Shown here one piece after another: positions 1-49,335 of a stretch of 58,319 nucleotides of DNA. The notes below the pieces were generated by a model that was given only the letters and a program-made list of their open reading frames with translations, was not told the origin of the DNA and made no database searches. The stretch is from Octopus sinensis (taxonomy: Eukaryota): NCBI RefSeq assembly GCF_006345805.1, contig NW_021833939.1:1-58319 (forward strand). Direction: 5' to 3'. Position 1 is the first letter of the stretch, and every line of letters starts with the position of its first letter. The position numbers were made by a program, and so were the translations under genes.

Positions 1-189
1 GTAGTTCATTGTATGTTTATGTGTAATAGATACGCAAATTGAGAGTGCTCACTGATAATCTCCATCCACCGGACTACTCCCACTGCACCACAAACAATAC
101 CAATCCTAACGCTGAGGCTAATACTAAATATAACGCCCGGTTAATTTCAGGTAATTATAACCCAAAAAACTCCACTTAGTACCCCCTAG

Positions 190-560
190 AAGACTATGTA
201 ACTGTAAACTCCTCTCCCTTGCAAAACAAATGCCTCACGAGAAATATGGTACATAAGTATATGGCCACTACGGAAGATTCCAAGAATGCATATATCACCT
301 CGAGCAGCACTACCTTCAAAGCCAGAATTAGTAACCATTATTCTGGCTTTAAATCTCAAGTGTAAACTAATACTATATTTATATCTAGTCTCATTCATTA
401 CCTAAAACATAATTCAGTTGTATACAGTTTAAAGTGGACTTTTATTACTCACGCCAACAAATGCGATCTCTGCATCGCAGAAGTCTTATCTGTTATGCAA
501 TGCAGCAACTGTTTTAATGAACGAAGCTACTTTATTCTTAATTGCCAACACAAATTATGT
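190..560 (+). mobile_element. Degenerate Penelope-like element GIY-YIG endonuclease region
   Basis: Cross-frame translation NKCLTRNMVHKYMAT...AYITSSSTTFKARISNH...KCDLCIAE...NCQHK matches the PLE pattern C..KCL...VY...YIG.T...FK.R..NH...C.LC..E...C.H. Confidence 0.7.
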
Positions 561-2072
561 AATACATATGTGTGTGTGTATATGTATGTATGTACATGTA
601 TATATATATATGTGTGGTGTGTGTGTGTGTGTGCTCCCTTCTTCTGGCCCTCATTACACCCCAAACAAAGCTTTTTAAAATACAAATTTTAAAATACGCC
701 CCCCAATGAAGCCAAGGTTCAATTTGGTTAAATACCTATTTGTGTACATGCGCCGCTCGCTTACTTCTATCCTATCCTATATGTATATACCACCTTACAC
801 AATTACATGAGACACCACAAAATGTGTGATTATTATACTACATAACATGAAGAATTCAGTTGCATATAATTGATATTTATTCATAAAACTTCAATCCCTC
901 CTATACACAGAAAATATCTTACACAGCGAAAAGCACCCAGCAACTGGATAACAGACGTCCAGACTGCACCCATCCCACTTTCACCATCCCCACAAAAAAT
1001 CAGCATCTCACCACCGTCTACTTATATATGATCAACCACATCAACCACTATAAAGCGTTGTATTTGACTAAGATATCTGTCCCAGAGACACAGCATCTGT
1101 CTCATCAAAATTTGCAATATCGTGTGGGAGTATCGGTTAGTTTCGGTTTAGAAAAATACTGTCTGGTACGAGTGTTAAGAAGTGACGCAATTCATCACCT
1201 TCGACAATGTTCAACCCTCAGAAATCAACACCACACATGTCTCAACGACGGAATCTATTTCAACGAATTGATGCATAGATGCTACATCCATGTTACCCAT
1301 ACAGTAGATACTGAGGCCACGAGTGTAGTTGACTTCACAGATCCTGCTAAACAGGTCCTCGGTGCTATCATATGCATTCACTGACAGTTCTATCGAAAGG
1401 CACAACATCTGTGAAATAAAATATAACAGGGCGAATGGGTGTGTCCATAATATAGTCAGTATAGGAAGGTTTGTGGTCTTTCCGGACGCCATACACTGGT
1501 GAAATTTCTTTTTTTAATTCTTTAAAGTGTTTCAGCTTTAAAGTTGCGGTCATGCTGAGGCACTACCATTACAAAATTGTTAACGGTCGCACTCTCACAT
1601 CGAACACATATGAGTATTCACCATCTTTTCCCCTCCTCATTGTAAAATATAGTCACGACACTCAGATTTCTGACATTTCATTGCATGATACCAATATAGT
1701 TTAACAGGCTACCTACAAACTACAAGATTTATTGTATTGCTGCGTACTAGAAACCGTTTGTGAGAAAGCATGGTAGCTTTTCTTTTTTCATACGCTTATT
1801 TAAAATCTACTTTAGTCCTACTTCAGTGCCGGTATTGAGATCTAGATCTTTATACGATTAACTTGAAATATATGGATGTATTCATAAAAGGTACAAATAT
1901 GTTTCGACTTATATTTATTAAATTCCACTTAAATCTCTGAAACCTAAGTATACAAACCCACAGCCCAGCCTCAAACTAATTGCAATGAAACTAGGGTCAG
2001 TGGGCAGGCCACCGTTGGTGAGACGAGAATTTTTGACAACGAGAAATAAATGTTCAAATAAAGTTAATATTC

Positions 2073-2111
<39 letters not shown>

Positions 2112-2112
<1 letters not shown>

Positions 2113-2564
2113 GTACTCTTACTCTTTTACTTGTTTCAGTCAATTGGCTGCGGCCATGCTGGAGCACCGCCTTTAATCGAGCAACTCGACCCCGGGACTT
2201 ATTCTTTTGTAAGCACAGTACTTATTCTATCGGTCTCTTTTGCCGAACCGCTAAGGCAACGGGGACATAAACACGCCACCATCGGTTGTCAAGCAATGCT
2301 AGGGGCACAAACACAGACACGCAAACACACACACGATATATAATATATATATATATATATATGTATATATATGCGTGTCTGTGTTGAGCTATATATACAT
2401 ATATACGACGGGCTTCTCTCAGTTTCCGTCTACCAAATCAACTTACAGGCTTTGGTCGGCCCGAGGCTATAGTAGAAGACACTTGCCCAAGGTACCGCGC
2501 AGTAGGGCTGAACCCGGAACCATGTGGTTGGTAAACAGGCTACTTACCACACAACCACTCCTAT
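2112..2564 (-). mobile_element. tRNA-derived SINE (octopus-type)
   Basis: Minus-strand head with A-box-like tggttgtgtggt and B-box-like ggttcagccc, then a body and a central microsatellite. Multiple copies occur in the window. Confidence 0.85.
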
Positions 2565-2585
2565 ATCTATTTATGTATATATATG

Positions 2586-2616
<31 letters not shown>

Positions 2617-2701
2617 GTATATTTGCATACATGCATGTATATACACATACATACATATAAATACCATACATATTATATATATATATACATATATATATGT
2701 G

Positions 2702-2746
<45 letters not shown>

Positions 2747-4177
2747 TATAAGAAAAGGAGAAAAATATTGTGGATACTTATTGCATTTGTATCACAATAA
2801 AAACATAGCAAAATGTTTAATGCAAATAAAATTTTAATGAACAAACATACACATAAAATAAGCAGAAAAAGTGCTACACATGTTTCAAGCTGTTCACTAT
2901 GAAAACAATGCTTCGGATCCGCAGGGTTCGAACCATGTTAATAGTTGTAAATGTCAAAAATAACAAAGTGACCAGATATCTTCAGGGTTGTCATGTGCAA
3001 AATGCTAATGCTTACTTATTTTTTCACAGGAATTCCAGTTGGTAAAAAACTTACTAGATAAGATGGATTAGGACCACTTATTCATATATATTAAGTATCT
3101 ACGTAATGTAAACATTAGTTTGTTAAAAATAAGTAAGAGGGAACGCCGAGGGAGTAATGGGGAAGGTATTAGCTAATCAAATCTTTCAAAACAGTTATTA
3201 AGGATTTGAAAAATAGACGGTTATGTGTTTTGAGGGACATTATGCAATCATTTAAGAGAATATATAGCGGTTAGGAGTTGTGAGGGACGTTATGTAATTA
3301 GTTTAAGATATTGTGAAGACGTTAAAAAAAGATTGAATTAAAGAGAAGAGATAAGAGATAGGGAGAGATAAGAAAAAATTTTAAAAAGTAAGAATACAGA
3401 GAGAAATAAATTTATTGGGGAAAAGAATAACGAATTAAAAAATTTAGCTAATTGAAAGAAGTTATAAAAAACAATGAGTGATAAGGGATAAAGTATATGT
3501 GCAGATTTTAATATTTTAAAGTTATGGCTAAGAAAGATTATGCTATATTGTATACTTAGGTAATTCTAAAGTATGAGTTCAATTAAAGGTTCACTTGTAA
3601 AGAGGCTTATATCTTCACTGATTATGACCAATTAATAGTGGAGGATATACAAGCAAAATGAAATTTAAAGATAAGGCTCTATCGTTCGATTATGAAGAAA
3701 CTTTTTCGTACTTTTAATCTCTATAAAACAAGCACGACATTTAGATTACAGAGGCTACAAACATAGAAATAGACAAACCGAGCCTCAACAGAAAGGGGGG
3801 AAAAGAGGATAAAACAAGAACCATATACAGTGTAATCGCAGAGAAAACAAACATGCACACGTGGTGTGATAAAATATAAGAAGCAGAGATAAATAACTAA
3901 ACAAAAAACTATATAAAGGGCACAGATACAAACAATACAGTAAGCAAACCTACATACACAAACAAACACACAGTAAACGCCATGTAAATGGCGGGCTTTT
4001 TCGAATTGCATTTCGGTAACAATGTGCTTATTCGGAATAAAAATTCAGTATTGAATATACCGGTTAAATTTATAATTTAAAATAGTATAAAATCTTCATA
4101 AGAATTTATCAAGTAGTTAGCGTGAAAAACCTCATAAGAGAAAAAATTCCACCATTTTTTCACTTAAATATATTTAT

Positions 4178-4560
4178 TTGTGACTATACAAACTGTAATT
4201 ACCGACGTAAGTGTGTCGTTGTGAATTTTAACACTACAACATCGGAAATACCTTTTAAGGAAACCCATGCAAGTTGTTGTGCTTTGAGGTGTAATAATTA
4301 CTGATAATTACTAATATCAAACTACTCTCCCTTTGAAACTGTCCCCTTTAAGCACAAATTATTGTTTCTGTGTATATGAGTTAAATTTAAAGAAGCATAT
4401 TCCACATCTTATCTGCATAGCTATGACGATGTAATTAGAAACATTCCTAAATTTATTTCCAAGAACTTTCTTAGGGTGTTTTCTCTCTTGGTATTTGCAT
4501 AACTAACTGGAAACAATTCTATAATTAAAGAAAGTTCAGTCTTTAAAATTAATGTATTCT
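4178..4560 (+). pseudogene. 5'-truncated paralogue of the sushi gene (last 41 codons + 3'UTR)
   Basis: Encodes CDYTNCNYRRKCVVVNFNTTTSEIPFKETHASCCALRCNNY*, aligning to 15723-15849. The UTR aligns to 15850-16107. No upstream coding sequence is present. Confidence 0.9.
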
Positions 4561-4864
4561 TTGATTTTGCTTCTATTAACGTTTCCTTTTCCATTACGCA
4601 CATTTTTTTACACATTCTATTATCTCGACAAGTGTTTTTTCGGAGACATTCTGAAACTAAGAACTATTTAGTAAGTAGTTCACAACGTGTTCATGTGTAT
4701 AGATGCACAAATTGACAGTGCTCACTGATAATCCTCCCCCCTCGGACTGCTTCCACTGCACTACAAAACAATACCAACCCTAACGCTGAGGCTAATACTA
4801 AATATTACTCCTGGTTAAAATCAGATAATCATAACCCCACAAACCCCACTTTATATCCTCTAGA

Positions 4865-5265
4865 AGTCATTGCAGCTGTAAATGCTCCATCTCCTGTTCC
4901 TTATAAATCAAATGCCTCACAAGAAATGCAGTACAAATGTATGTGGTCACCACGGATGATTCCAAGTAAGTATATATCAGAACTAGTACCACCACCTTCA
5001 AGGCCAGAATTAGTAACTATTTTCTGGCTTTAAATTTCAAGCGACAACTAATACTACCTCTTTATCTAGGCTCATTCATACTTAAAAATTAATGCAGTTG
5101 TATACAGTTTAATATGATCCTTGTTACTCATGCCAAACCGTAAACGGTTATAGCAACAAAAATGCGATCTCTGCATCGCAGAAGTCTTATCTGTTATGCA
5201 ATGCAACAACTGTTTCAATGAACGAAGCTACTTTATCCTGAATGGCCGACACAAATTATGTAATA
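4865..5265 (+). mobile_element. Older paralogue of the same PLE GIY-YIG relic
   Basis: CSCKCSISC...KCLTRN...VYIRTSTTTFKARISNY...TTSLSRLIH...KCDLCIAE...GRHK, with stops and frameshifts. Confidence 0.7.
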
Positions 5266-5491
5266 CCTTCTGAAGTTACAAATAATTCTACCTTCCCCTA
5301 TAATTCCCTACCAATCCTCCTACATCAGCGTCACTTGAATTTCTTCAAAGTATTTATAACATATACTTTTTAAAGCTATTTTCATACATTTCCTTAACAT
5401 TGTTAGATCTTTATAGCAAGGTGAAATATAAAGATTAATAAAAAAGAGAACAAAATTTTAGAGAGCACAATAGATTGTTAGACTCCAACAA

Positions 5492-5552
<61 letters not shown>

Positions 5553-5590
5553 CTAGCTTAAAGCCCGCCCTATCGGGCGGCTTTTGAGTT
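5553..5590 (-). mobile_element. Helitron-type 3' terminus
   Basis: Minus strand has a GC hairpin (gccgccc-gata-gggcgggc), then tttaag, CTAG and T. The 5' end was not identified. Confidence 0.55.
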
Positions 5591-5775
5591 TCCTGCATTG
5601 AGTACATATTAAATTGTTTTAGACTTAACCAATATTTTTCAAGCAATGAACAATTTTCATCAAAACAATGATATAATTTGTCGATTTGTAACTTATTGCA
5701 ATGCTGCACGATAAACAACATTTTTTGTCCTCCCACTCAGGCGTCAGTACAATTTTTTTCTGTCTAACCTCTTTT

Positions 5776-5838
<63 letters not shown>

Positions 5839-6287
5839 TTCTCTCCATCTCTCTCTCTCGCTTTCTGTTGGTTGTTTTCAGCCATCACCATCACCAGTAC
5901 CACCACCATCGCCACCACAACTGCCACACACACCATTCAGATTTCTGACGCCAGCTCCATCAATACCTTCGACTTCGCCGTCTTCCCTTCCACCACCATC
6001 ACCACTGTCTTTTACATTGCTTACTATCACTGTCATCCCTGAACTGCGACCACCATCATCACTGTTACCTCCACCTCTATCACAACTACAGCTCATACTA
6101 TTATTATCAGCCTATTGCCATCACAACCATCAATCTACTACCGTCTGTATGCCTACTAATACTCTCACCTCATCACGCGGAATAGTAGAAATGTCACTGA
6201 ATAGTGAAAGAGGGGCTCAAAGTGTGACACACTGACACACAGAAATTCGCATTGGCATTTATTATTATTATTATTATTGTATTGTTG

Positions 6288-6326
<39 letters not shown>

Positions 6327-6392
6327 TATTATTATTATTATTATATGTATATATATATTATATGTACATATATATATATATATTATATTATA

Positions 6393-6440
<48 letters not shown>

Positions 6441-7434
6441 ATAATTGCCACAGCACATGAGCTGAAATTGAAATTCAAAAAATATATATATATATATCTA
6501 TATATATATATATATATATATTATAATATATATATATAGTTAATCGAAAACATGAAAACATAAAGAGAACAACACCAACACGCGAGGACGTGGAACAAAT
6601 CTAGTATTATTGGACGCTCAGGAAGGAAGGTATATGTATATATAATATATATATATAAATTGTAAAAGGATGCGTGGCGTTCGATCATATAATAATATCA
6701 ATAATATATAAATATATGCATATATACATACATATATGTACTGCTTACATATATATATATATATGTATATATACATGCATATATGGGCACAGGACATCAA
6801 AAAACGTTGAACACAATTAGAAACGAAAACATGAAAACAAAAACATAGAAACGAACTTTTTTTCGAACAACGAAAAAAACAGAGAAACGAGACATGCAAC
6901 ATAAAGAATATTCCCCTTCTTCAGTTGTCCCTGTTCCATCTACTCCACGTTCGAAGGCAAGGACAATACGTGACTTCGTTGAAACAGTCCTTCCTGCAAA
7001 GCAAATTAAATAAAATTTGGGATTTTTTGCGGGGGGGTGAATGTGGTAACAAGAACAGGACTGTGAGAACAAAACAGCAAAAACAAACGTTAAGCCAAGA
7101 CGATAGAAAAATTATTATGAACGCTAGGAAGACGAGCTTATGAAGGAGGCAGTATAAGCACGTTTTGTCTTTACGAAGGTAGTGGGCAAAATGATAGATT
7201 CTCTTTCGTCACGTGTTAGCGACGAGAGAGTCGAGGAGGAGGAGTGAGAGAGAGGGGACGGTGAAGAGGAGAGGAGAAGAATAAAGAAGGGTGGGAGAGA
7301 AAACCAGAAAGGATGAAGAACAAGAGAGGGAGAAAGATAGACAGAGAAGAGATAGTAAAGATAGAAGAGTGCGCATCGTAATTATTAAGATGAAACTTCC
7401 TTGGAAAAGGATGCGTGGCGTTCGATATATATAT

Positions 7435-7494
<60 letters not shown>

Positions 7495-7599
7495 TGTGTG
7501 TGTGTGTGTGTGTACATGTGCGCGAGCGTGTGTTGTGTGTGTGTGTGTGTGTATGTATGTATATATAAGTTTATGAATTTATGCTGCAAATCGGCAATG

Positions 7600-8050
7600 T
7601 CGGTCAACTAGAATCTAGCACTATGAAGAGCATCCAGGAAGTAGCTAACTCCATTCACCAGAGTAATAAAGTAACAATAGACTACCCTAGCAAGCGCTCG
7701 AACTACCGGTTTCAAACTGCCAACTAAAAATAGTAAGGTCCAGATCCTTCATTCCCGTTATGCCAAACCCATGCCCTCTAAACACCTTGTCCACAAGAGC
7801 GCAGCTATTGCAGACAACGCCAAGTTCAATATCCTAATAGCAGACTTGGTGAGAGTGATGAGGAATGGGCCTTGCACGTGCAACCCAATAGAATTGGAAA
7901 GACACATACAGCACCTCATCCACCGTATGCAATTCCTGGTTACAACCAAAGGGAAAGGATTAGCGTGTACAAAAGAGCCAGGGCTAAGTACAATGCCAAC
8001 ATGCGATACATTTTGTCTGTGTTCATGTATGACGAAAGTAAATTATTGAT
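7600..8050 (+). mobile_element. Penelope-like RT C-terminal/thumb fragment
   Basis: IQEVANSIH..KVTIDYPS...ILHSRYAKPMPSKHLVHKSAAIADNAKFNILIADLVRVMRN...HIQHLIHRMQ resembles the PLE RT C-terminal region. Confidence 0.65.
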
Positions 8051-8389
8051 TTCATCCCAAGATGTCCTATACCGTTCCATATTTCAAACTTTTCGTGAAC
8101 TGAACTCCGTAAGTATTATAACTTTATCTATAAAAGTAAATTTACAATTAAATTTTTTCTTTTTCTTTTCTTTTTTCTTTTCTTTTTGTGGTAGCAACAA
8201 TCTATATCATTGCTGATAAATAGTCACTAATGAACACCGTTGGAAGATTAGAGGATAGAGACATGTGCATAAACATAGGGCTATCGTTTAAAACAGAGGA
8301 AACCTCGGTAACATATAATAATGTTGACCCAAGAGAGTGGGCAAAAAACTCATAGGTTGACTATAAATGAGCTATGCTATAACTGTGAA

Positions 8390-9518
8390 ATCTTGCATGC
8401 ATTAATTTCAGTTATTCTTATTAAAATCTGCATTATTTCTTTACACGTAAATTGAAATCTGACAGATCAAAGAACACTGTTATCAAGTACCAGCAGAAAA
8501 CGTGTTTAGTCACTCAGGTACATTCATGCTGCCATGCTTGCTATATTAAGGGATGACGCTCCATCTTCATCAACGGTGCAAAAGCAGATAGGTGAATTTA
8601 GGCGAGGATGGAGGGTTTTAAAGATCACCCAAGGTCTTTACGTCTTGCAACTACTACCACCGAAGAAAACGTTGGTCATGTTCACCACATGGTGAGGGAT
8701 GGCATATGATTGACTATCAATCAAATAACCAATTCTAAAAGCGTATACCGTGGGAGTTATTCTACACAATGAATGTGGCATGACGAAGGTATTGCTCGGT
8801 GGACTCCATGTCTTTTGACACCTGATCAAAAGCGCACCAGGCTGTCGACATCACAGAAAAATCTGTCACTCTTTCAGACAGATTCAGCTGGTTTCCTTGA
8901 ACGTTTTCTTAGCCAGGATGAATGTTGGTTTCATCACTTTGAGCCAGGGACAAAGAAACAATCCATGCTGTGGAAACACCCATCCTCATCTTCTCTAAAG
9001 TGGACCACGGTCGTTTCATCTCAGGGAAGGTGACGACCTCAGTCTTTTGGGTTGCAAAAGGCATTGTGTTCGTTGACTATCTTCAAAAAAGCCACGTCAT
9101 CAGTGGAGAGAAATATGCCAACTTGCTGAAGCAGTTGCAAAAGGCAATCAAGACTAAATGCCGATGAAAACTGATGAAAGGGGTTTTGTTTTATCAGAGC
9201 AATGCCCCAGCACACAAGTCCTTGGTTTCAATGGCTGCTGTGAATAGAGTGGCTTTGAACTGGTTGATCACCAGTGGTTTGATACCACTTGACTATCATG
9301 TCCCCAACATCATAAAAAATACTTGGCTGGAAACAGTATCGCTGTGACGATGACGTCACATCTGCTCTTGATAATTTTTTGACCCACAGGATGAAAGCTT
9401 CTTCAATAATGAGATTCAAACACTACAACACCGATGAAAGAAATGAAATAAACCTCATTTAGTCAAATTCCATGAGAGTATCTTGATTAGCCTGGGGACT
9501 TTTCAACCGACCTTCATA
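8390..9518 (+). mobile_element. Degenerate mariner (Tc1/mariner) transposon
   Basis: WTPCLLTPDQK (WVPxxL-like), QDECWFHHFEP.TKKQS..W, VFW...GIVFVDYL, SNAPAH. A right-TIR-like end acttttcaaccgaccttcata is followed by TA. Stops and frameshifts present. Confidence 0.9.
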
Positions 9519-9585
9519 TATGTTTTGTTAGATCTAAGCTCTATTGAAATTCTTATGTTGGCGGACTTGTGCCATTCCTGTCATG

Positions 9586-9743
9586 GTAGGTGCAGGTGTG
9601 ACCGAGTGGTAAGATGTTTGCTTTCCAACCATATAGCTGTAGGCTCAGTTCCACTGCATGGCACGTTAGGCAAGTGTCTTCTACTGTAGGCCTAGGCCGG
9701 CCAGGGTCTTGTAACTGGATTTCGTAGAAACCCGTGATGTGTG

Positions 9744-9774
<31 letters not shown>

Positions 9775-9995
9775 ATGAGAGAGAGCGAGAGAGAGTGCGT
9801 GCGCGTCGCGTAAGTGTGTGTGTATGTCTTCGTCTTTGTAACAGTTCCCCACTCAATTTGACAGCTGATGTTCGCTTGTTTACTTCTCCGAAACTTCGCT
9901 GTTCTGCGATGTGTAGGCCGATAGGATAAGCGCCAGGCTTGAAAATATAGGTACTGGAGTCGACGCAGTCTAATGACTGAAACAAGCGACAAAGT
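9586..9995 (+). mobile_element. tRNA-derived SINE
   Basis: Head gtgaccgagtggtaag...ggcaagtgtcttctact, central (GT)/(GA) repeats and tail tgactgaaacaag, shared with other copies. Confidence 0.8.
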
Positions 9996-10310
9996 TTCAT
10001 AAGAATGTGTGCCTTTTTTTTTTAGTATACCCTTTAGTGGCTGTATTTTATTGATCTTTGATTTTCCATAGAATCAAACATTAATTAGAAAAACATCCTT
10101 CGATATTGTCATTTAATTCAACGAAACATTTAAGGCAACGAAACAAACATGCACCTTTATAACAGCCAACGAACTTCTGTGCACCAGCAATCTAGTAAAT
10201 TGCTGAGCTGTCGTAACACCGTCATTTGTAAACATTCGACTTGATTATATTTATAGCCATAATTCTTATTGTTAATAAAGTTGTACTCTAATGTTAATAA
10301 AGTTGTACTC

Positions 10311-10530
10311 TATGATGGGCGTGCTGAAAAGTTCCCGGCTTTAAGGATATTGTGAAAGCCTGGTTGATGGCCCAGTATTCCGAGTTCTTTTACAGGGTTT
10401 AAAAAACCTGAAAGGTGACTGCAATAAGTGTGCGAATCTGAGAGGGGAATATGTTGAATAAAATCATAATTAACTGATCCTTCTGCATTTTCTTTTACTC
10501 CAAATGAACCACAAGGCGTTTGAGATTTCT
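10311..10530 (+). mobile_element. Short non-autonomous mariner derivative
   Basis: Mariner-like terminus tatgatgggcgtgctgaaaagttccc, then mariner-like 3' sequence aagtgtg...ggggaatatgttgaataaa. Confidence 0.55.
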
Positions 10531-11772
10531 TCCCAATAAAGCTTGATGCTTTACAATTGACGGGCATTTTCACGAGATTTAATGAAATTCGTTTCTAGCT
10601 CCAAGGAGCCAATACAACATCTTATGAGTTGTATAAAATGTAATGTCATTGTTCATCGAAAATCTTTATATTTTATGCCTAATATTGGGAAGAAGGAATT
10701 CCATCAGTTCGCAAAATTGTGATCCATTAAACAAGGTGTAATTCCATAAGAGATTGAAAAGTTCAATAATCGTTTATGAGATACAGGAAACCGATTTAGC
10801 GATATTTTGAACTTGAAGATGTGACTGGAAAAGGTATCTTTTTAATGTAAATGTTGTCGAGGTTGATGCTTATACCCGGAAAAAAAGTTTAGAATTTAAA
10901 TACGAAAAAAAGCCAATGGAACTTCGTTGTGGTGGATACCGAAATTTATGGAGATTTTTTTTTTTTAAATACCCGTTTAATATCCAAATACGTGGAAATT
11001 TATATCCATTTTACAGCTGCCTTTTTCTACCACGTATTTTGTTGAACCAGCTTTTAGGACAACAAATTATTTTGTCACTAAATTGGAAAAAACTGACCCA
11101 CAAATCACTGAAACATGATTCTTTTGTATTTTCCTTATGAAAATAGAAACAGTTAGTTTCAGCCTCAAAAATTACAATTAAAGGTAATTTCTTTAAATTT
11201 TATAATTTATGCAGAGTATGTGAAGTACTTTCAAATAATTTTGCTGTTTTATGTACTGTGTAACGCTTGTCAGTTTTTTCTTGTTTTCAATTGAAATATT
11301 AATGAGTGGGAGGAAAACATTGCCTACACACGAACATTACAAAAGTGTGCACTGTATTAAAACTTGACTTGTAATGATGCAAGCGATCTATCTATCTTTC
11401 TATCTACATATGCATGCATTTGGCATACATACATACATACATGCATGCATCATACATACATACATACATACATACATACATACATACATACATACATACA
11501 TACATACATACATACTACATACACACATATACAGCATTCTATGCAGTACTGTATATATATATATATATATATATATAGATATATATATATATAATAATAA
11601 ATATTAGGGAATATATCCAAATTTACAGGGAAAAAAAATCAGATTAGGATTAAATCCAATTTTATAGTAAAATATTATAAAATATTATTTGAGACAAAAC
11701 CACTATTTTGCAAAACAAACAAGGAAAGACTTAATCAATACATAAAATTTAATAAATAGTAAAAAAAAACCG

Positions 11773-11815
11773 CCACTACAATCGTTTCTTGTCTTGATCG
11801 ACAATCTTCAGGTGG
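11773..11815 (-). ncRNA. Minimal type I hammerhead ribozyme (inverted copy)
   Basis: Exact reverse complement of 13770-13812. Confidence 0.85.
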
Positions 11816-13769
11816 ACTTCCAATCTAAAAAATCAAAATTTTAAAATATAAAAATAATACTTTTAAATAATTAAAGTATAAATGAAAAAATATAAGTATA
11901 TAATCCATATATAACCTATATATAATCCATATCGAAAATATAGATTAATTACCACGAATTCCCTAAAAAAAAAAAAAAAAAAAACCATGATAAAACAAAA
12001 CTCTTAAAACATATAACGATAAAATCTCCCTTTGCTAAACTCTATAACAAACCTATAAAGTAAACCCCCTAACCTAAACATTCACACACAAATACACACA
12101 CGTAACCACAGACTCACGACTTATACACATACCTATACAAACTTATAAACCTCAATATACAACAAAACCCACTCCCTCCCCACACAGACAAATTAACACA
12201 TACATCCCAAAACCTAAATAACAAACCCATATACACATTCACACAACAAAACACACACACGCACACAAAACACTCACACACAAAATACATATACTCCCTC
12301 ACATATACGCCTATACATACTCACTAAACTCGACATATACAACAATACTTACACACACCCACAAAAACATTATATACATTTATGAGCTTTAACTCACCTT
12401 AGCATCTCTAACAAACAACTTGCAGAAACCCAATCCCATTCTCTATACCTATCTCACTACTACACTATTCCATTCACATTCCGAGCAACGCTAGTCCACC
12501 ACCCGGTTATTCACGTGGCAAAACGAACACCACTCAAAAATTATGAATGAAACAATGTAAAAAAATAACCAACACCTAAAATAGACAAAATACCACAAAT
12601 TACCTAAAAAAAACCATGATAAACCAAAACTCATAAAAGCATATAACGATAAAATCTCCCTTTGCTAAACCCTATAACAAACTTATATAGCAATCCCCCT
12701 AACCTAAACATTCACACACAAAAAACCCACACATAAACCACAGACCCAAAACTTATACACAAACCTATACTAACTTATAAACCTCAATATACACCAAAAA
12801 CCACTCCCTCCCCACACAGACAAATTAACACATACATCCCAAATCCTAAATAACAAACCCAAATACACATTCACACACAAACACACACACACACAAAACA
12901 CACATACACAGATACATATGCTCCCTCACATACGCATATACATACTCACTAAAACTCGATATATACAACAATATTTACACCCACACTCATACAGATAAAT
13001 AAATTAATTATACAATTAAAAACTCACAACCAATCTCATATACATAAACACTCTTATGAAAACAACAATAAATACATCGTAATTAACCAGAATATCAAAA
13101 ATAACATTATGACATAAGGATAAATCAAATACATACTTACAATTCAGTTACAAATTATGAAGTGAAATTAGATTTTTAGCCGTTAAAAAACCAAACAAAA
13201 TTACGTTACCATGGAAATAACTAATGTAAAAAAAGAATACGCGCCATAGAAAGTAAACGTCATTCATAGTATGAATGGAGAAATATAATAAATGGAACTA
13301 AAAACTATTTCCACGTAGCAAACCAACATACTTAAAAAAATTTATTATGAATGGATTCTTTAAAAACTATCATGAAAAATCAATTATATACATTTATGAG
13401 CTTTAGCTCACCCTAGCAACTCTAACAAACAATTTACAGTAACCCATACTCAATGCCTACCTCATTACCACCCTAATCCATTCACAATTCCAAACAACAC
13501 TATACACCACACGGTTACAATTCCCAACTCTACCCATTCACAATTTCAACGACGTTCCCTACAACAACTCTACATATAAGCCTCAACATATACACCGGAG
13601 ATACACTTACACATCCGTGCGGATGGGTGAGAGTATACATTAAGTGTAGTGATGGGGCTCCCATTTCTAAACACATTTGTACCTGTGTGGTAGTCTCCAT
13701 GTGTATATTCACGCACGGGTATAAATATTATTTTTATATTTTAAAATTTTGATTTTTTAGATTGGAAGT

Positions 13770-13812
13770 CCACCTGAAGATTGTCGATCAAGACAAGAAA
13801 CGATTGTAGTGG
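13770..13812 (+). ncRNA. Minimal type I hammerhead ribozyme
   Basis: CCAC-CUGAAGA-UUGUC(GAUCAA)GACAA-GAAA-C(GAUU)G-UA-GUGG: complete core, 5-bp stem II, 4-bp stem I and a GUA cleavage triplet. Confidence 0.85.
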
Positions 13813-14267
13813 CGTTTTTTTTGACTATTTATTAAATTTTATGTATTGATTAAGTCTTTCCTTGTTTGTTTTGCAAAATAGTGGTTTTGTCTCAAATAAT
13901 ATTTTATATATATATATATATTATATATATATATATATATATAATATATATATATAATACTATATATATATATTATATATTATATATATTATATATAAAA
14001 ATATATATATATGTATATGAAATTATACAAAGTATCAACAATAAAATTTATTTAATATAATGTTATCGTTTTTCATAGTTTGTAATTTGTGCTTGTAATG
14101 TACTCAGTTTGATATTTAGTCTGGACATAATATTCTGTACTCTCTAAAAGAGGTGTATATGGGAGTATCCTTATTCATTCAATTAAAACGGTGTCAAATT
14201 CAAAAAAGTAAATATAAGTAAGTTTTTCTCAGTACTACTTATACGCTCCTGGGTGTGTTATCTCGAG

Positions 14268-14274
14268 TATAAAA
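14268..14274 (+). promoter_or_regulatory. Candidate TATA box (TATAAAA) of the sushi gene
   Basis: TATAAAA lies ~93 nt upstream of the ATG at 14367. Position only; no expression data. Confidence 0.45.
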
Positions 14275-14366
14275 GGTGCATTGAACAGTCACTGAAGGCA
14301 ACGAAATAACAAGTGTGAACACAGCGACCTTATCTTCACGAACAAGTTAGAAACAAAATTGAGAGA

Positions 14367-15849
14367 ATGATATCCAGAAAATTTTATTTCCTTTTCTTAA
14401 TTATATTAACAGTGAAGAGTGAAAATAATACATTTGGAAATGTTATGAAAAAGATCGTATCTGAATACAGTAATTCGACTTCAACCGAAAACAACTATGC
14501 TCCGTGGTTTTTTGAACAAATTATAAATATCCTAAACTGTGGTCCTTTATCGACATTAAAGAACAGTCGGATACATTATATTGTGAAATGGGAAGAGGCA
14601 AAAATACATCTGAAACAAAAGTGCAACCGCTATTTTGAAGCAAGCGTAGAGAATACAGCCGATATTATTTGTTCGAATGGTAAATGGATGTATGAAGATA
14701 AAAAATGTAAGTTAATAACTTGCCCGATTTTTCATAAACCTGCACGCAGTTTCATGATAAATGTTGCATACTCATATAACTCTGTTATTCGTTTTTCCTG
14801 CCTGTCTGGTTGTTTTTTACGAGGAAGCAATTCAATACGTTGTCAAGAAAATAAACAGTGGTCGTCTCTCCCACCAATCTGTGAAATTGTTAAATGTCTC
14901 CCACCGAACCCACCCAAACATGGCAATGTAAACAATACAAATGAAGTTAAAGTTAACGAAACAATTCATTTCAGTTGCTTAAAGCCATATAGTCTGAAAG
15001 GTGAATCTGTATTAACTTGTCTTTCAGACGGCAGCTGGAACTTTCCGGCACCTGTTTGTACTTTGAATTGCTTTGTACCTGAAATTGCTGGTAGAGTGGT
15101 GACTATTTCTGAAGGTACAATATTAAAACCAAGAACCTTAATCAACGAAGGAGGAAAAGTCATATATTCTTGCAAACGATCCTTCATTCCTATCGCGTTT
15201 GGTGTCGTTCAATGCTTGTCAAGTAAATGGTATCCAGATATACAGTGCAGAAACGCGTGTAAAATGAGAAACGAAATGGGTTAAATTTTATTTTGTCACG
15301 TAATTTTTCGGTTATTGAATATAGTTGTCCGTTGGAGAAACATTGTTGGGAGATTCAAAAAGAACCTGTTTAGAAAATGGAACATGGAGTGGAAAACTTC
15401 CACAGTGTGCAAAGAACTGTCAATTGTTGCGAAAATTTGGCATATATAGCTACCGAAATTCGGAAACTTTGAAATATCTTCCGTATGGCAGTACAGTTCC
15501 AGAAAATACGAACATTACTTATTCTTGTGAATTCCCAAATTCGAAGAAATTGAACGAGAGCGTAATGTGCCATAAAGGTATACTGACCCCAACACCAGGC
15601 TGTGCATTTAAAAATATTCGACTTGATCGTAACAACAATCTTCTTTACAAGAATATTTCATCAGATTCCCATGTTTCCGGAACAAACATTGATTGCAAAT
15701 TTTTTGGTTACCGCCAGTACACTTGTGACTATAGAAACTGTAATTACCGACATGAGTGTGTCGTTGTGAATTTTAACACTACAACATCGGAAATACCTTT
15801 TAAGGAAACCCATGCAAGTTGTTGTACTTTGAGGTGTAATAATTACTGA
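14367..15849 (+). CDS. Secreted multi-sushi (CCP/SCR) protein: signal peptide + 6 CCP modules + 7-Cys C-terminal tail, ~494 aa if two 1-nt deletions are restored; no introns evident
   Basis: ORF 14367-15284 begins with a hydrophobic signal (MISRKFYFLFLIILTVKS) and has four C..C..C..W..C modules, e.g. CLPPNPPKHG...FSCLKPYSLKGESVLTCLSDGSWNFPAPVC. A third frame over 15263-15328 reads NEKRNGLNFILSRNFSVIEYSC and links to ORF 15325-15849 (SVGETLLGDSKRTCLENGTWSGKLPQC...). Adding one A at ~15261-15264 and one T at ~15328 gives one continuous frame. Many N-x-S/T sequons. Confidence 0.88.
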
Positions 15850-16068
15850 TAATTACTAATATCAAACTACTCTCCCTTTGAAACTGTCCCCTTTAAGCAC
15901 AAATTATTGTTTCTGTGTATATGAGTTAAATTTAAAGAAGCATATTCCACATCTTATCTGCATAGCTATGACGATGTAATTAGAAACATTCCTAAATTTA
16001 TTTCCAAGAACTTTCTTAGGGTGTTTTCTCTCTTGGTATTTGCATAACTAACTGGAAACAATTCTATA

Positions 16069-16074
16069 ATTAAA
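16069..16074 (+). promoter_or_regulatory. Candidate poly(A) signal (ATTAAA) of the sushi gene
   Basis: ATTAAA lies 220 nt after the stop and is conserved in the paralogue (4524-4529). Near-identity between the paralogues ends ~33 nt downstream. Confidence 0.4.
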
Positions 16075-16419
16075 AGAAAGTTCAGTCTTTAAAATTAAAT
16101 GTATTCTGCATAATTTTGTTTTATTAACGTTTCATTTTCCATTGTACACATTTCGTTACACATTCTGTTATCTCGGAAACTTTTTTTTTTTTTGAGGCAT
16201 TCCTGCTGAAACTAGGAACTTACATTGTAAGTAGTTCATTGTATGTTTATGTGTAATAGATACGCAAATTGAGAGTGCTCACTGATAACCTCCATCCACC
16301 GGACTACTCCCACTGCACCACAAACAATACCAATCCTAACGCTGAGGCTAATACTAAATATAACGCCCGGTTAATTTCAGGTAATTATAACCCAAAAACT
16401 CCACTTAGTACCCCCTAGA

Positions 16420-16790
16420 AGACTATGTAACTGTAAACTCCTCTCCCTTGCAAAACAATGCCTCACGAGAAATATGGTACATAAATATATGGCCACTACG
16501 GAAGATTCCAAGAATGCATATATCACCTCGAGCAGCACTACCTTCAAAGCCAGAATTAGTAACCATTATTCTGGCTTTAAATCTCAAGTGTAAACTAATA
16601 CTATATTTATATCTAGTCTCATTCATTACCTAAAACATAATTCAGTTGTATACAGTTTAAAGTGGACTTTTATTACTCACGCCAACAAATGCGATCTCTG
16701 CATCACAGAAGTCTTATCTGTTATGCAATGCAGCAACTGTTTTAATGAACGAAGCTACTTTATTCTTAATTGCCAACACAAATTATGTAA
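16420..16790 (+). mobile_element. PLE GIY-YIG relic (duplicate of 190-560)
   Basis: Near-identical to 190-560. Confidence 0.7.
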
Positions 16791-16826
16791 TACATATGTG
16801 TGTGTGTATATGTATGTATGTACATG

Positions 16827-16868
<42 letters not shown>

Positions 16869-18136
16869 CCCTTCTTCTGGCCCTCATTACACCCCAAACA
16901 AAGCTTTTTAAAATACAAATTTTAAAATACGCTCCCCAATGAAGCCAAGGTTCAATTTGGTTAAATACCTATTTGTGTACATGCGCCGCTCGCTTACTTC
17001 TATCCTATCCTATATGTATATACCACCTTACACAATTACATGAGACACCACAAAATGTGTGATTATTATACTACATAACATGAAGAATTCAGTTGCATAT
17101 AATTGATATTTATTCATAAACCTTCAATCCCTCCTATACACAGAAAATATCTTACACAGCGAAAAGCACCCAGCAACTGGATAACAGACGTCCAGACTGC
17201 ACCCATCCCACTTTCACCATCCCCACAAAAAATCAGCATCTCACCACCGTCTACTTATATATGATCAACCACATCAACCACTATAAAGCGTTGTATTTGA
17301 CTAAGATATCTGTCCCAGAGACACAGCATCTGTCTCATCAAAATTTGCAATATCGTGTGGGAGTATCAGTTAGTTTCGGTTTAGTTGACTTCACAGATCC
17401 TGCTAAACAGGTCCTCGGTGCTATCATATGCATTCACTGACAGTTCTATCGAAAGGCACAAGATCTGTGAAATAAAATATAACAGGGCGAATGGGTGTGT
17501 CCATAATATAGTCAGTATAGGAAGGTCTTGTGGTCTTTCCGGACGCCATACACTGGTGAAATTTCTTTTTTTTAATTCTTTAAAGTGTTTCAGCTTTAAA
17601 GTTGCGGTCATGCTGAGGCACTACCATTTACAAAATTGTTAACGGTCGCACTCTCACATCGAACACATATGAGTATTCACCATCTTTTTCCCTCTCCTCA
17701 TTGTAAAATATAGTCACGACACTCAGATTTCTGACATTTCATTGCATGATACCAATATAGTTTAACAGGCTACCTACAAACTACAAGATTTATTGTATTG
17801 CTGCGTACTAGAAACCGTTTGTGAGAAAGCATGTAGCTTTTCTTTTTTCATACGCTTATTTAAAATCTACTTTAGTCCTACTTCAGTGCCGGTATTGAGA
17901 TTCTAGATCTTTATACGATTAACTTGAAATATATGGATGTATTCATAAAAGGTACAAATATGTTTCGACTTATATTTATTAAATTCCACTTAAATCTCTG
18001 AAACCTAAGTATACAAACCCACAGCCCAGCCTCAAACTAATTGCAATGAAACTAGGGTCAGTGGGCAGGCCACCGTTGGTGAGACGAGAATTTTTGACAA
18101 CGAGAAATAAATGTTCAAATAAAGTTAATATTCATG

Positions 18137-18172
<36 letters not shown>

Positions 18173-18198
18173 ATATTATATATATATATATATATATA

Positions 18199-18425
18199 TC
18201 TGTACTCTTTACTCTTTTACTTGTTTCAGTCATTTGGCTGCGGCCATGCTGGAGCACCGCCTTTAATCGAGCAACTCGACCCCGGGACTTATTCTTTTGT
18301 AAGCCCAGTACTTATTCTATCGGTCTCTTTTGCCGAACCGCTAAGCAACGGGGACATAAACACGCCACCATCGGTTGTCAAGCAATGCTAGGGGCACAAA
18401 CACAGACACGCAAACACACACACGC

Positions 18426-18458
<33 letters not shown>

Positions 18459-18656
18459 ATATATGCGTGTCTGTGTTTGCGTATATATACATATATACGA
18501 CGGGCTTCTCTCAGTTTCCGTCTACCAAATCAACTTACAAGGCTTTGGTCGGCCCGAGGCTATAGTAGAAGACACTTGCCCAAGGTACCGCGCAGTAGGG
18601 CTGAACCCGGAACCATGTGGTTGGTAAACAGGCTACTTACCACACAACCACTCCTA
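18199..18656 (-). mobile_element. tRNA-derived SINE (duplicate of 2112-2564)
   Basis: Near-identical to 2112-2564. Confidence 0.85.
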
Positions 18657-18747
18657 TATCTATTTATATATATATGTATATATATATATATACATATATA
18701 TATATGTATATTTGCATACATGCATGTATATACACATACATACATAT

Positions 18748-18778
<31 letters not shown>

Positions 18779-18788
18779 CATATATATA

Positions 18789-18830
<42 letters not shown>

Positions 18831-20089
18831 TATATATATATATATATATTACTATAAGAAAAAGGAGAAAAATATTGTGGATACTTATTGCATTTGTATC
18901 ACAATAAAAACATAGCAAAATGTTTAATGCAAATAAAATTTTAATGAACAAACATACACATAAATAAGCAGAAAAAGTGCTACACAGTTTCAAGCTGTTC
19001 ACTATGAAAACAATGCTTCGGATCCGCAGGGTTCGAACCATGTTAATAGTTGTAAATGTCAAAAATAACAAAGTGACCAGATATCTTCAGGGTTGTCATG
19101 TGCAAAATGCTAATGCTTACTTATTTTTTCACAGGAATTCCAGTTGGTAAAAAACTTACTAGATAAGATGGATTAGGACCACTTATTCATATATATTAAG
19201 TATCTACGTAATGTAAACATTAGTTTGTTAAAAATAAGTAAGAGGGAACGCCGAGGGAGTAATGGGGAAGGTATTAGCTAATCAAATCTTTCAAAACAGT
19301 TATTAAGGATTTGAAAAATAGACGGTTATGTGTTTTGAGGGACATTATGCAATCATTTAAGAGAATATATAGACGGTTAGGAGTTGTGAGGGACGTTATG
19401 TAATTAGTTTAAGATATTGTGAAGACGTTAAATAAAAAGATTGAATTAAAGAGAAGAGATAAGAGATAGGGAGAGATAAGAAAAAATTTTAAAAAGTAAG
19501 AATACAGAGAGAAATAAATTTATTGGGGAAAAGAATAACAAATTAAAAAATTTAGCTAATTGAAAGAAGTTATAAAAAACAATGAGTGATAAGGGATAAA
19601 GTATATGTGCAGATTTTAATATTTTAAAGTTATGGCTAAGAAAGATTATGCTATATTGTATACTTAGGTAATTCTAAAGTATGAGTTCAATTAAAGGTTC
19701 ACTTGTAAAGAGGCTTATATATTCACTGATTATGACCAATTAATAGTGGAGGATATACAAGCAAAATGAAATTTAAAGATAAGGCTCTATCGTTCGATTA
19801 TGAAGAAACTTTTTCGTTACTTTTAATCTCTATAAAACAAGCACGACATTTAGATTACAGAGGCTACAAACATAGAAATAGACAAACCGAGCCTCAACAG
19901 AAAGGGGGGAAAAGAGGATAAAACAAGAACCATATACAGTGTAATACGCAGAGAAAACAAACATGCACACGCGTGTGATAAAATATAAGAAGCAGAGATA
20001 AATAAGTAAACAAAAAACTATATAAAGGGCACAGATACAAACAATACAGTAAGCAAACCTACATACACAAACAAACACACAGTAACGCC

Positions 20090-20478
20090 ATGTAAATGGC
20101 GGGCTTTTTCGAATTGCATTTCGGTAACAATGTGCTTATTCGGAATAAAAATTCAGTATTGAATATACTCCGGTTAAATTTATAATTTAAAAATAGGATA
20201 AAATCTTCATAAGAATTTATCAAGTAGTTAGCGTGAAAAACCTCATAAGAGAAAAAAATCCACCATTTTTTCACTTAAATATATTTATTTATATTATATA
20301 GAGAGCATTATTTTTTCTCTTATGAGGTTTTTCACGCTAACTACTTGATAAATTCTTATGAAGATTTTATCCTATTTTTAAATTATAAATTTAACCAGAG
20401 TATATTCAATACTGAATTTTTATTCCGAATAAGCACGTCGTTACGGAAATGCAATTCGAAAAAGCCCGCCATTTACAT
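20090..20478. repeat. Long inverted repeat (arms 20090-20269 / 20310-20478, ~40 nt spacer)
   Basis: atgtaaatggcgggc...cataagagaaaaaa versus ttttttctcttatg...gcccgccatttacat. A further partial copy lies at ~20780-20880. Confidence 0.9.
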
Positions 20479-20875
20479 AGATGTATAAGGGATGAACATT
20501 TCTAAATACTACGGTGGATACGATGGTAGTTCGTCTGATATGTTGATTTTGTTCATTCATTATAAATCTTGAATTATGCTTGCACTGACGAGTAAAGAGT
20601 GCAAAGCACTGCACTGATTACGAAATTACAGGTGATATGCAGCTGAATTCTGTTTTAAATGTCTTGCTTCGAGAATTGCATTTGGTAAGATATGTTTATT
20701 TATTTTAGTAGTTTTGACTTTGAGTCCCTCCTAGCGTGTGGCATTTATGCGAAATAATCCCCTCTATATAATATAAATAAATATATTTGAGTGAAAAAAT
20801 TGGTGGATTTTTCTCTTATGAGGTTTCTCACGCTAAATACTTAATAAATTCTTATGAAGATTTTATTCTATATTT

Positions 20876-20917
<42 letters not shown>

Positions 20918-23615: not shown

Positions 23616-23655
<40 letters not shown>

Positions 23656-45331: not shown

Positions 45332-45335
<4 letters not shown>
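44942..45335 (-). mobile_element. 5'-truncated R4/Dong family B insertion
   Basis: CFLVDVSIPADDNV..KE.EKLSKYKDL...IPIIVGALG. Same 3' terminus as at 35066. Confidence 0.88.
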
Positions 45336-45361
<26 letters not shown>

Positions 45362-45362
<1 letters not shown>

Positions 45363-48300: not shown

Positions 48301-49335
48301 TTGTTTTCTTTGTTTTTTCGGGGGCATACAGCTGGTTTCAATTGCCCTAGCAGAAGCGTAAATAATTTCATTTAACTCAGTAAAATCAGGTTTTAATTCT
48401 TGTATTATTTCATTTGTTACATAGTTGCCAATTTTGATTTGTTTTTTATTTTGGTTTGTATTTGAGAGTTTATGAAGTGGTTCTCTATCATTCATACTTG
48501 TATGTCTTACAACTTCAAGCGTATTCAGGATTTTCTGCCTCATTTCTGCCATAGACTCTCTGTGTTCTTCAGCAAATGCGAGATCTTCAGTTACTGTTGT
48601 TTTATCATTTTTCTGGCTATCTTTAACAAGTTCAATAGAATTTCTTGTATCTTCAGGCCTTTGCGTGCTTTGGTCAGATGGCAGTCTTTCAATTAAGCCT
48701 TGTGGCGGGCTATTCTGTTCATCTGATTCTTCATTTCCTTTGTGTCTTATATTTATGTCATTTTCCGTTGCGTCCTTGATCGCGCTTATTTCACTGTGAG
48801 TCCGTTATTTCTAAGGATATCCCTCTTCACATTTGCCAATTTGTTCTCGCCCAAATAGGGTCTACTGTCTTGATTCGGTGTTCTCCATATACTGTAAGAG
48901 TTTGCAGTGTGTCTCTCTTGAGATGGCCTACCTAATGCATAGTAATAAGCGTATATTACTTCTTTATACTCTTCTCGGGTCCATTTGTTCCGCTTACATT
49001 TTTCTTTCTGTGGTGGTTGTGGTGGTGAACTTGGAGGGCTCGAGTTGGGGAATTTCCCGTTCAAGTGACCATCCATGTCCGTATTCAGAGAAGAGTTTGT
49101 GCCAGTTGATGACTTTTCGATCCCAGGCTTGCTCTTCCCTGGGGGACGCGCTTCCAGATTAACCATAGGACAAGCGATTTGGTATACTGATTTAGTTTTC
49201 CTTTTAGTTTCCAAAAACATTTTGGTGCTACGATAATGTTATCATTTTTGAGCTCTGAGTGGCTCGCGGGGAGACGGCCATCATTGCCGTTACAATTATA
49301 ATCGTACCATTATAGCAGCCGTAGCCGGCTTATTA
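45362..49335 (-). mobile_element. R4/Dong-type LINE, family A copy 2 (near full length, few frameshifts)
   Basis: Long ORFs 48786-49220, 47923-48552, 46704-47963 (RT, FYMDDLKLY) and 45591-46691 (CRFC..ETVDHLISGC, KPDIVV). Highly similar to 23656-27590. Confidence 0.95.

Follow-up and report, generated by a model that had tools for sequence, protein, structure and literature searches.

The question raised by this locus is why two stretches of a single octopus contig should differ only by amino-acid-changing substitutions over a short cysteine-rich coding segment, share a 3' untranslated region (UTR) free of substitutions, and then diverge abruptly near a likely poly(A) site. The window analysed was the whole of the unplaced contig VCDQ01000542.1 (58,319 nucleotides, nt) from Octopus sinensis assembly GCA_006345805.1, which, according to a reference listed in PMC12564688, was built from PacBio reads and Hi-C. 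Intact members of the two gene types concerned (A-type, XP_036354704.1, hereafter P0001; B-type, XP_029654565.1, hereafter P0019) lie on a second unplaced contig, VCDQ01000500.1, of which L001 denotes a stretch. The window holds an A-type remnant at 4178-4560 (copy A) and a B-type gene at 14367-15849 (gene B). Tail residues are numbered as P0019 codons, and all statements on layout and junctions refer to the two contigs as assembled. We put at roughly 0.6 the probability that copy A is the orphaned 3' end of an A-type secreted sushi-domain gene at the joint of a 16.1-kb duplication, a joint figure that also covers gene conversion between the two gene types and a diversifying tail.

Alignment of 4178-4560 to 15723-16107 gave four substitutions and no indels over the 126 nt of coding sequence (CDS) and stop codon (from 4179/15724). 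All four changed the amino acid (AGA/ACA, R>T; CAT/CGT, H>R; GAG/AAG, E>K; ACT/GCT, T>A), and the six cysteines of the 41-codon stretch were unchanged. Over the UTR, 0 of 256 aligned nt were substituted, with two 1-nt indels in A-runs (at 16072 and 16097), while from 4561/16108 onwards 122 of 673 aligned nt (18%) differed, together with 12 indel events; the break lies 33 nt after the first ATTAAA of gene B and 8 nt after the second. The original prediction had been made from these features (four replacement and no silent changes in 41 codons with all cysteines kept, a substitution-free UTR with two homopolymer indels, and a sharp loss of identity about 33 nt past ATTAAA), and its counts were borne out by the alignment. 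Taken alone, four replacements out of four are unremarkable (p = 0.42), and the excess of substitutions in the tail (4/126) relative to the UTR (0/256) was nominally significant (Fisher p = 0.011).

Gene B as assembled is split by two single-base gaps (15264/5 and 15330/1) relative to P0001 and P0019, leaving open reading frames (ORFs) at 14367-15284 and 15325-15849 and pieces in three different frames; this reflects either a real pseudogene or long-read consensus error. The 305-aa product of the first of these ORFs was located on a single public record, contig VCDQ01000542.1. Among near-identical copies in the region, 1-nt indels outnumbered substitutions (12 of 15 indels were 1 nt long, as against 6 substitutions). 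For this reason the single-base indels of the contig, namely the two in the UTR and the frame breaks in gene B, were not trusted and may be consensus errors; substitutions are less suspect. The gaps were bridged with N placeholders for alignment and dN/dS only.

Copy A had been taken for a paralogue, a view that had to be given up. Homology to P0001 in copy A starts at nt 1359 of 1485, the first 1,358 nt of the CDS being absent, and copy A lacks the full ORF, start codon and upstream coding homology of an intact gene: no ATG or upstream coding homology was found for it, and the frame is open only from 4086 (31 codons). In a comparison of the window with itself, only the equivalent of 20290, without coding homology, lay upstream of 4178. 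By self-blastn, 1-1151 corresponded to 16231-17384 at 98.8% and 1323-4179 to 17379-20290 at 96.8%. The homology blocks abut at 4178/4179 with a 2-nt overlap, the first stopping where the block pairing 4178 with 15723 starts; the joint reads TATATTTATT followed directly by TGTGACTATACAAAC, and its TT is present in both parents. As assembled, copy A is thus a headless 3' piece of a gene with a rearrangement junction at its start, the length of its coding part being set by the breakpoint and not by a domain. The four differences stood as counted, but only one of them (T488A) is specific to copy A; two (R457T and H463R) are older differences that separate B-type from A-type genes, and E464K is specific to gene B. 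If copy A is a breakpoint relic, its four changes alone would be unreadable as selection on a working gene.

The near-identity of copy A and gene B probably has an older origin, which could be traced through silent sites in a comparison of gene B with the intact A-type gene. In codons 1-242 the synonymous divergence (dS) was 0.18 and the dN/dS ratio (omega) 0.37; in codons 243-411 dS was 0.019, the UTR differed at 0 of 257 positions, and past 16107 substitutions returned to 18%. The remnant of the A-type UTR in copy A likewise had no substitutions relative to either gene B or P0001. The last old-type difference is at 15092, which limits the homogenised tract to at most 15093-16107 (about 1 kb). 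Silent or UTR sites differed at 3 of 414 positions (about 0.7%) within the tract and at 149 of 825 (18%) outside it (Fisher p = 1.6e-24), a contrast that backs gene conversion, one of the causes named in the original prediction, as the class of explanation for the sharp boundary. Homology persists on both sides of the tract, alignable at 78-90%, and silent divergence within it lay far below that of either homologous flank; because both flanks stay homologous, the tract is two-ended, as expected of conversion and not of a single crossover. The boundary seen for gene B against P0001 and copy A recurs for P0019, so the tract is present in both duplicate copies, and since P0019 shares the boundary the tract predates the duplication. 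From these sequence comparisons we infer that non-allelic gene conversion homogenised about 1 kb of an A-type gene and its B-type neighbour, in a tract that would have run from the middle of the CDS to 16107 before the 16.1-kb unit was duplicated. In tandem gene families such as the globin, RH and MHC genes, non-allelic gene conversion is known to drive concerted evolution while a selected, variable segment escapes homogenisation. The octopus locus resembles these in its abrupt switch of silent divergence between neighbours (about 18% to about 0.5%), in a tract of about 1 kb within the transcribed region and in one sub-region that stays different; it departs from them in that the variable segment lies inside the tract and carries replacement changes only, which looks like divergence after conversion and not like exclusion from it.

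That variable segment is the cysteine-rich C-terminal tail. Its framework consists of eight cysteines (C438, C444, C454, C459, C465, C486, C487 and C491) and a conserved FFGYR motif, with variable residues between. The last 83 residues matched no Pfam family and gave no meaningful PDB match. A tail profile searched against 1.84 billion representative proteins retrieved only family members at E <= 1e-10, together with three weak matches (E about 2e-4), each made up of several short stretches. In an AlphaFold2 model from a 10-sequence alignment, the predicted local distance difference test score (pLDDT) was below 50 for residues 416-495 and 70-90 for the CCP modules that precede the tail. Among gene B, P0019, P0001 and copy A, 20 positions varied in the 252 nt of the tail and none of the changes was synonymous, compared with 6 variable positions in the 505 nt of CDS from 15093 to 15597 and 1 in the 257-nt UTR. 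Besides the differences already named, P0001 alone carries C459Y, C465H (2 nt), P478H and S485R; P0019 has N492E (2 nt) and a change of the stop codon to Arg, adding one residue, and keeps all eight cysteines; in gene B, residue 436 is H and residue 438 is S, a cysteine being lost at the second (window 15677). The two cysteines missing from P0001, C459 and C465 (L001 11375-11395), are possibly a disulfide pair, and C438 is the one missing from gene B.

The pattern of a variable tail beside a conserved UTR therefore became stronger with more copies than it had been in the first pair. Between gene B and P0001, counting by NG86 gave 0.5 synonymous (Sd) and 15.5 non-synonymous (Nd) differences in the tail (omega about 8), and the ratio of non-synonymous to synonymous changes was 16:0 in the tail and 38:25 in the body (p = 0.0017). 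A comparison of tail with CCP modules by dN/dS had been proposed; run as pairwise maximum likelihood (ML), it supported a tail omega above 1 between A-type and B-type genes (P0019-P0001, p = 0.014; gene B-P0001, p = 0.006), whereas three cross-species pairs went in the same direction, with tail above body, but did not lie significantly above 1: for protein P3 of O. sinensis against P2 and P4 of O. bimaculoides the tail omega was 1.35 and 1.86 (body 0.45 and 0.58), and for P11 of O. sinensis against P5 of O. bimaculoides it was 0.97 (body 0.32). Within O. bimaculoides, P2 and P4 gave a tail omega of 2.6 (p = 0.059) with a body value of about 0.9. Across the body of CCP modules omega was 0.39-0.58 in four of five informative pairs (about 0.4 for P0019-P0001 and gene B-P0001) and 0.89 in O. 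bimaculoides P2-P4. Since its split from copy A, P0001 has gained five tail changes where 0.5-0.8 were expected (p = 2e-4 to 1e-3); copy A has one.

In the homogenised tract, then, differences would have accumulated only in the 83-codon tail, and all as replacements, which points to selection that diversifies a surface for binding or recognition on a conserved cysteine scaffold. On this sequence evidence diversifying selection probably acts on the tail. Several observations weigh against that conclusion. The omega tests use few and non-independent pairs, with the cross-species pairs not significant (0.97-1.86). Some changes may be decay, given the frame breaks and lost Cys438 of gene B and the loss of Cys459 and Cys465 from P0001. 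In four cases paired changes fall within 3-4 nt of each other (TGT>CAT, AAT>GAA, GGA>AGC and CGTAAG/CATGAG), and omega would be inflated if these arose as multi-nucleotide mutations or by micro-conversion from paralogues outside the sample. The tail differences might on these grounds be non-adaptive, if decaying copies are under relaxed constraint, if mutation is locally concentrated or strikes several nucleotides at once, or if micro-conversion brought in patches from divergent paralogues; we regard this as possible, though not likely. Relaxed constraint cannot exceed the neutral rate, and tail dN (0.08) stands against a silent divergence of at most 0.02 in the same tract, while the P0001 lineage shows a 6- to 10-fold excess of tail changes. 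With imported patches, or with older and unconverted ancestry, some 5 synonymous differences would be expected at a dS of 0.11 (0-0.5 were seen), and the variant states are carried by none of the sampled paralogues.

Acceleration of secreted proteins with a cysteine framework and conserved non-coding flanks is a familiar pattern in snake PLA2, three-finger toxins, conotoxins and abalone lysin. Shared with those systems are a secreted product, a conserved cysteine scaffold, replacements that outnumber silent changes and a UTR that is better conserved than the coding tail. Unlike them, the octopus variable part is an 83-residue C-terminal domain on five or six conserved CCP modules and not a processed small peptide, its conserved UTR is explained by recent conversion, and there is no evidence of a toxin or gamete role in the family.

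The second contig bears on the duplication that would have produced the relic. The last 127 nt of P0001 and 1.1 kb of its flank match 4178-5417 (6 substitutions in 703 nt of flank), and P0019, which corresponds to gene B (33 substitutions over 3.2 kb), lies about 15 kb beyond P0001; VCDQ01000500.1 is colinear with the window from 4178 to 17202. Window 1-969 differs from 16231-17202 by 6 substitutions and 2 indels, and at each of these the last 967 nt of VCDQ01000500.1 have the state of 1-969; because the agreement holds at every diagnostic site, this contig leads into the first positions of the window. Read from the two contigs, the simplest layout of the region would be an intact A-type and an intact B-type gene, flank, a joint of palindrome loop to mid-exon, the A-type fragment, gene B, flank and the full palindrome. 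The breakpoint equivalent to 20290 falls inside the 53-nt loop (20258-20310) of that palindrome, 6 nt off centre, as expected of a palindrome-mediated rearrangement in a long near-perfect inverted repeat; the hairpin predicted for the palindrome as single-stranded DNA has an energy of -176 kcal/mol (z = -38.6). A tandem duplication may have arisen from a break, or a switch of template, at the palindrome; its left breakpoint fell within the exon of the A-type gene, and for that reason the second A-type copy would have been non-functional from its formation. The junction is a clean candidate case of palindrome-triggered duplication truncating a gene. Palindrome-mediated rearrangements are well known, for example from human translocations at AT-rich palindromic repeats, with breakpoints at the palindrome centre. 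The octopus junction is alike in that a long, AT-rich and nearly perfect inverted repeat has the breakpoint in its loop, with 2-nt microhomology at the joint; it differs in being an intrachromosomal duplication of about 16 kb, in having an exonic partner breakpoint instead of a second palindrome, and in being known from the assembly alone. About 170 bp at 1151-1323 are present in copy 1 only, and a third, partial copy of the palindrome arm (about 92%) at 20752-20883, 270 bp past the palindrome, suggests a small foldback or miniature inverted-repeat transposable element (MITE)-like repeat family.

The same arrangement could be an assembly artefact, in which VCDQ01000500.1 and the window are two haplotypes of one A-B pair, the join at 4178 is chimeric at the hairpin palindrome, and copy A is the 3' end of an intact allele whose differences from P0001 are allelic. 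Both contigs are unplaced in a PacBio-based assembly, and the substitution divergence of about 1% from copy to copy also fits two haplotypes, two facts that tell against a duplication; the surplus of 1-nt indels points to poorly polished sequence, and the locus had no representative on chromosome scaffolds among the protein matches. We nevertheless consider an artefact rather improbable. Window 1-4179 has 43 substitutions of its own relative to 16231-20290, with both versions on one contig; large indels in the repeat-rich spacer separate the duplicate versions (7.4 kb extra in VCDQ01000500.1 and 2.4 kb extra in the window); the join shows microhomology in a hairpin loop, like biological palindrome-mediated breakpoints; and a mis-join would require the consistent support of several chimeric reads.

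If conversion accounts for the match, the position of the 3' boundary is left to be explained. The identity break lies at the distance expected of a cleavage site from either ATTAAA, in both gene types it is followed by a U/GU-rich stretch, and the motif around the break is partly conserved in distant paralogues. A tract edge just past two ATTAAA hexamers fits an mRNA end and is equally expected if conversion cannot enter a flank that is 18% diverged. The original prediction had raised a cDNA route, by which a 5'-truncated reverse transcript of one paralogue's mRNA serves as repair template, so that the tract is anchored at the poly(A) site and ends within the CDS. The tract is indeed 3'-anchored, ending 8 and 33 nt past the two hexamers with its 5' end in the CDS, the family genes are intronless, and retrotransposons encoding reverse transcriptase are abundant in the contig; by chance a tract would end so close to a chosen point of the 2.8-kb paralogous block (no more than 30 nt to either side) in about 2% of cases, which is suggestive. 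Against this, the boundary has no A-rich remnant and the cleavage site is only predicted (a weakness also for any reading that leans on the poly(A) site), conversion from a DNA template ordinarily covers tracts of about 1 kb, and the flank past 16107 is already diverged enough to stop heteroduplex extension by itself. Other duplicates in the family include the TATA box and sequence past internal A-runs, as DNA-level copies do and retrocopies do not, and there is one tract only. A cDNA template is accordingly judged improbable by a wide measure. Strong constraint on the UTR, the other cause that had been proposed, fared worst: purifying selection on the 3' UTR alone, keeping 4305-4560 and 15850-16107 identical without conversion, would suit the roughly 256 nt of UTR with no substitutions among three copies and one in the fourth and the partly conserved motifs near the 3' end, but it is highly improbable because homogenisation has affected synonymous sites in the 169 codons upstream to the same degree (dS 0.019 versus 0.18), copy A is a dead fragment incapable of being under constraint, and the UTR is not significantly less diverged than the silent sites of the tract (0/257 versus 2.5/157).

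A bolder and very tentative synthesis may be offered, for which the odds are long: the family would be an octopod-restricted tandem set of intronless genes for secreted CCP proteins whose orphan eight-cysteine domain diversifies and serves for recognition, in an immune, gamete or venom context, with scaffold and UTR kept uniform by conversion, and with tracts anchored at the mRNA 3' end through a reverse-transcribed mRNA template.

Members of the family are intronless secreted proteins of about 494 amino acids (aa) with a signal peptide, CCP/sushi modules and the orphan eight-cysteine tail. A protein search yielded full-length relatives (44-89% identity, about 483-495 aa) from three species only: O. 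sinensis, O. bimaculoides and Argonauta hians. All members with a retrieved locus are single-exon genes; in O. bimaculoides they cluster on one chromosome within about 0.3 Mb, and the O. sinensis cluster fits into about 0.1 Mb. Pfam Sushi (PF00084) scores were 94.5 bits for the conceptual protein of gene B, 108.6 for P0019 and 107.7 for the further member P0003, all above the gathering cut-off of 20.7, and the other Pfam matches (HRM and F54D1_6_C) were sub-threshold only. The architecture comprises about 5-6 CCP modules, a non-CCP leader of about 57 aa and the non-CCP tail of 83 aa. Database names of members ('complement factor H-like', 'SVEP1', 'CSMD3-like' and 'P-selectin', the closest proteins being O. 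sinensis ones annotated 'complement factor H-like') are misleading. Complement factor H consists of 20 contiguous CCP modules, and regulators of complement activation (RCA) bind C3b or polyanion. Tandem CCP/sushi modules in a secreted protein are common to both, whereas the octopus family, with some 5-6 modules, a non-CCP leader, an orphan cysteine tail and no introns, does not have the all-CCP architecture of factor H and RCA proteins, and the name derives from domain similarity only.

Cephalopods also have secreted venom proteins of SE-cephalotoxin type, which are about 1,050 aa long and combine LDL-A, TSP-1, EGF and sushi modules (bioRxiv 10.64898/2026.04.09.716377; PMC13252362). The two groups are alike as cephalopod secreted proteins with sushi among cysteine-rich modules; unlike the toxins, the present family shows only sushi at significant E-values, Pfam giving no LDL-A, TSP1 or EGF match in its proteins and hence no SE-cephalotoxin-like architecture, and no relationship is claimed. 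No paper citing the five RefSeq accessions was found, and nothing on the family appeared under octopus, sushi, venom or duplication topics; locus look-ups for family members turned up no RNA-derived contigs carrying family proteins. The family and its orphan fast-evolving tail are new, while the breakpoint relic, the concerted evolution and the excess of replacements on a cysteine framework are of known kinds. A previously undescribed family with conserved CCP modules and a fast-evolving tail, in a cluster evolving by duplication and conversion, would be a reasonable target for expression and binding studies, such families being the usual recognition candidates.

Retroposition was considered as the mode by which the family spread, from the observations that O. 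bimaculoides P2 and P4 share only 2.26 kb and that the match of O. sinensis P3 stops near an internal A-run. It was rejected: the shared block holds the TATA box (the motif upstream of gene B lies inside the block common to P2 and P4) and passes the A-run, which implies DNA-level duplication. Homology between A-type and B-type genes reaches 366 nt upstream and 686 nt downstream of the transcript, beyond what a processed retrocopy would carry; no A-run occurs at 16107, and the intronless state is the only retrocopy feature present. The RefSeq model XP_036357238.1 (390 aa; O. sinensis CM016861.1, in a stretch called L009, 10001-11476) skips part of an uninterrupted 491-codon ORF and appears under-called. 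A decayed family fragment at 50633-50788 on the minus strand of the window matches residues 382-433 at 46% identity and has an in-frame stop. Coordinates of the features discussed are collected in the table.

Table. Features of the window (contig VCDQ01000542.1) bearing on copy A, gene B and the duplication, with the basis of each assignment
Feature	Position	Strand	Basis
End of duplicate copy 1, downstream flank of B-type gene, equivalent to 16231-20290	1-4179	+	self-blastn
Left palindrome arm in copy 1; right arm missing, cut within loop	3982-4147	.	blastn of palindrome against window
Rearrangement junction, palindrome loop (equivalent to 20289-20290) to mid-exon of A-type gene, TT microhomology	4178-4179		
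Duplicate copy 2 of 16.1-kb unit: A-type mid-exon, gene B, palindrome loop	4178-20290	+	colinear with contig VCDQ01000500.1, about 1% substitutions
Headless coding remnant, last 41 codons and stop of A-type gene	4179-4304	+	match to L001 11359-12609
A-type 3' UTR remnant, inside probable conversion tract; ATTAAA 4524-4529, second hexamer ATTAAT	4305-4560	+	
A-type downstream flank; 18% from B-type flank (to 5266), 0.85% from contig VCDQ01000500.1	4561-5417	+	
7.4-kb indel	5417-5584 (window) versus L001 12609-19996		
2.4 kb extra in window	11590-13967		
TATA box of gene B, TATAAAAG	14268-14275	+	conserved in paralogues
Gene B, intronless B-type gene: signal peptide, CCP modules, Cys-rich tail	14367-15849	+	ORFs, Pfam Sushi
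Probable non-allelic gene-conversion tract, B-type/A-type	15093-16107	+	silent-site profile against P0001
83-codon Cys-rich tail (codons 412-494) and stop, replacement hotspot	15598-15849	+	four-copy site table, NG86, ML
Putative 3' UTR of gene B; ATTAAA 16069-16074 and 16094-16099	15850-16107	+	poly(A) site predicted only
B-type downstream flank, old paralogy with 4561-5266	16108-16793	+	
Near-perfect palindrome, arms 20090-20257 and 20311-20478, 53-nt loop	20090-20478	.	arms 168 nt, 98% complementary

The rest of the contig is rich in repeats. Its middle is dominated by a 5.9-kb hexanucleotide microsatellite (29166-35068; TATTAT-like, about 990 copies, 89% matches) with extreme GC skew. A retrotransposon without long terminal repeats (non-LTR) is present in two minus-strand copies that are 94% identical (23627-27882 and 45332-49632), the downstream one keeping long ORFs (RVT_1 at 46704-47963 and a zf-RVT-like region at 45591-46691), and further RVT_1 fragments lie at 35064-35813 (minus strand) and 39482-41354 (plus strand). 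At 8534-9347, short ORFs in shifting frames resemble a decayed DNA-transposase gene, with no Pfam match for the two pieces tested. The region from 38 to 42 kb is unusually GC-rich for the contig (47-55%).

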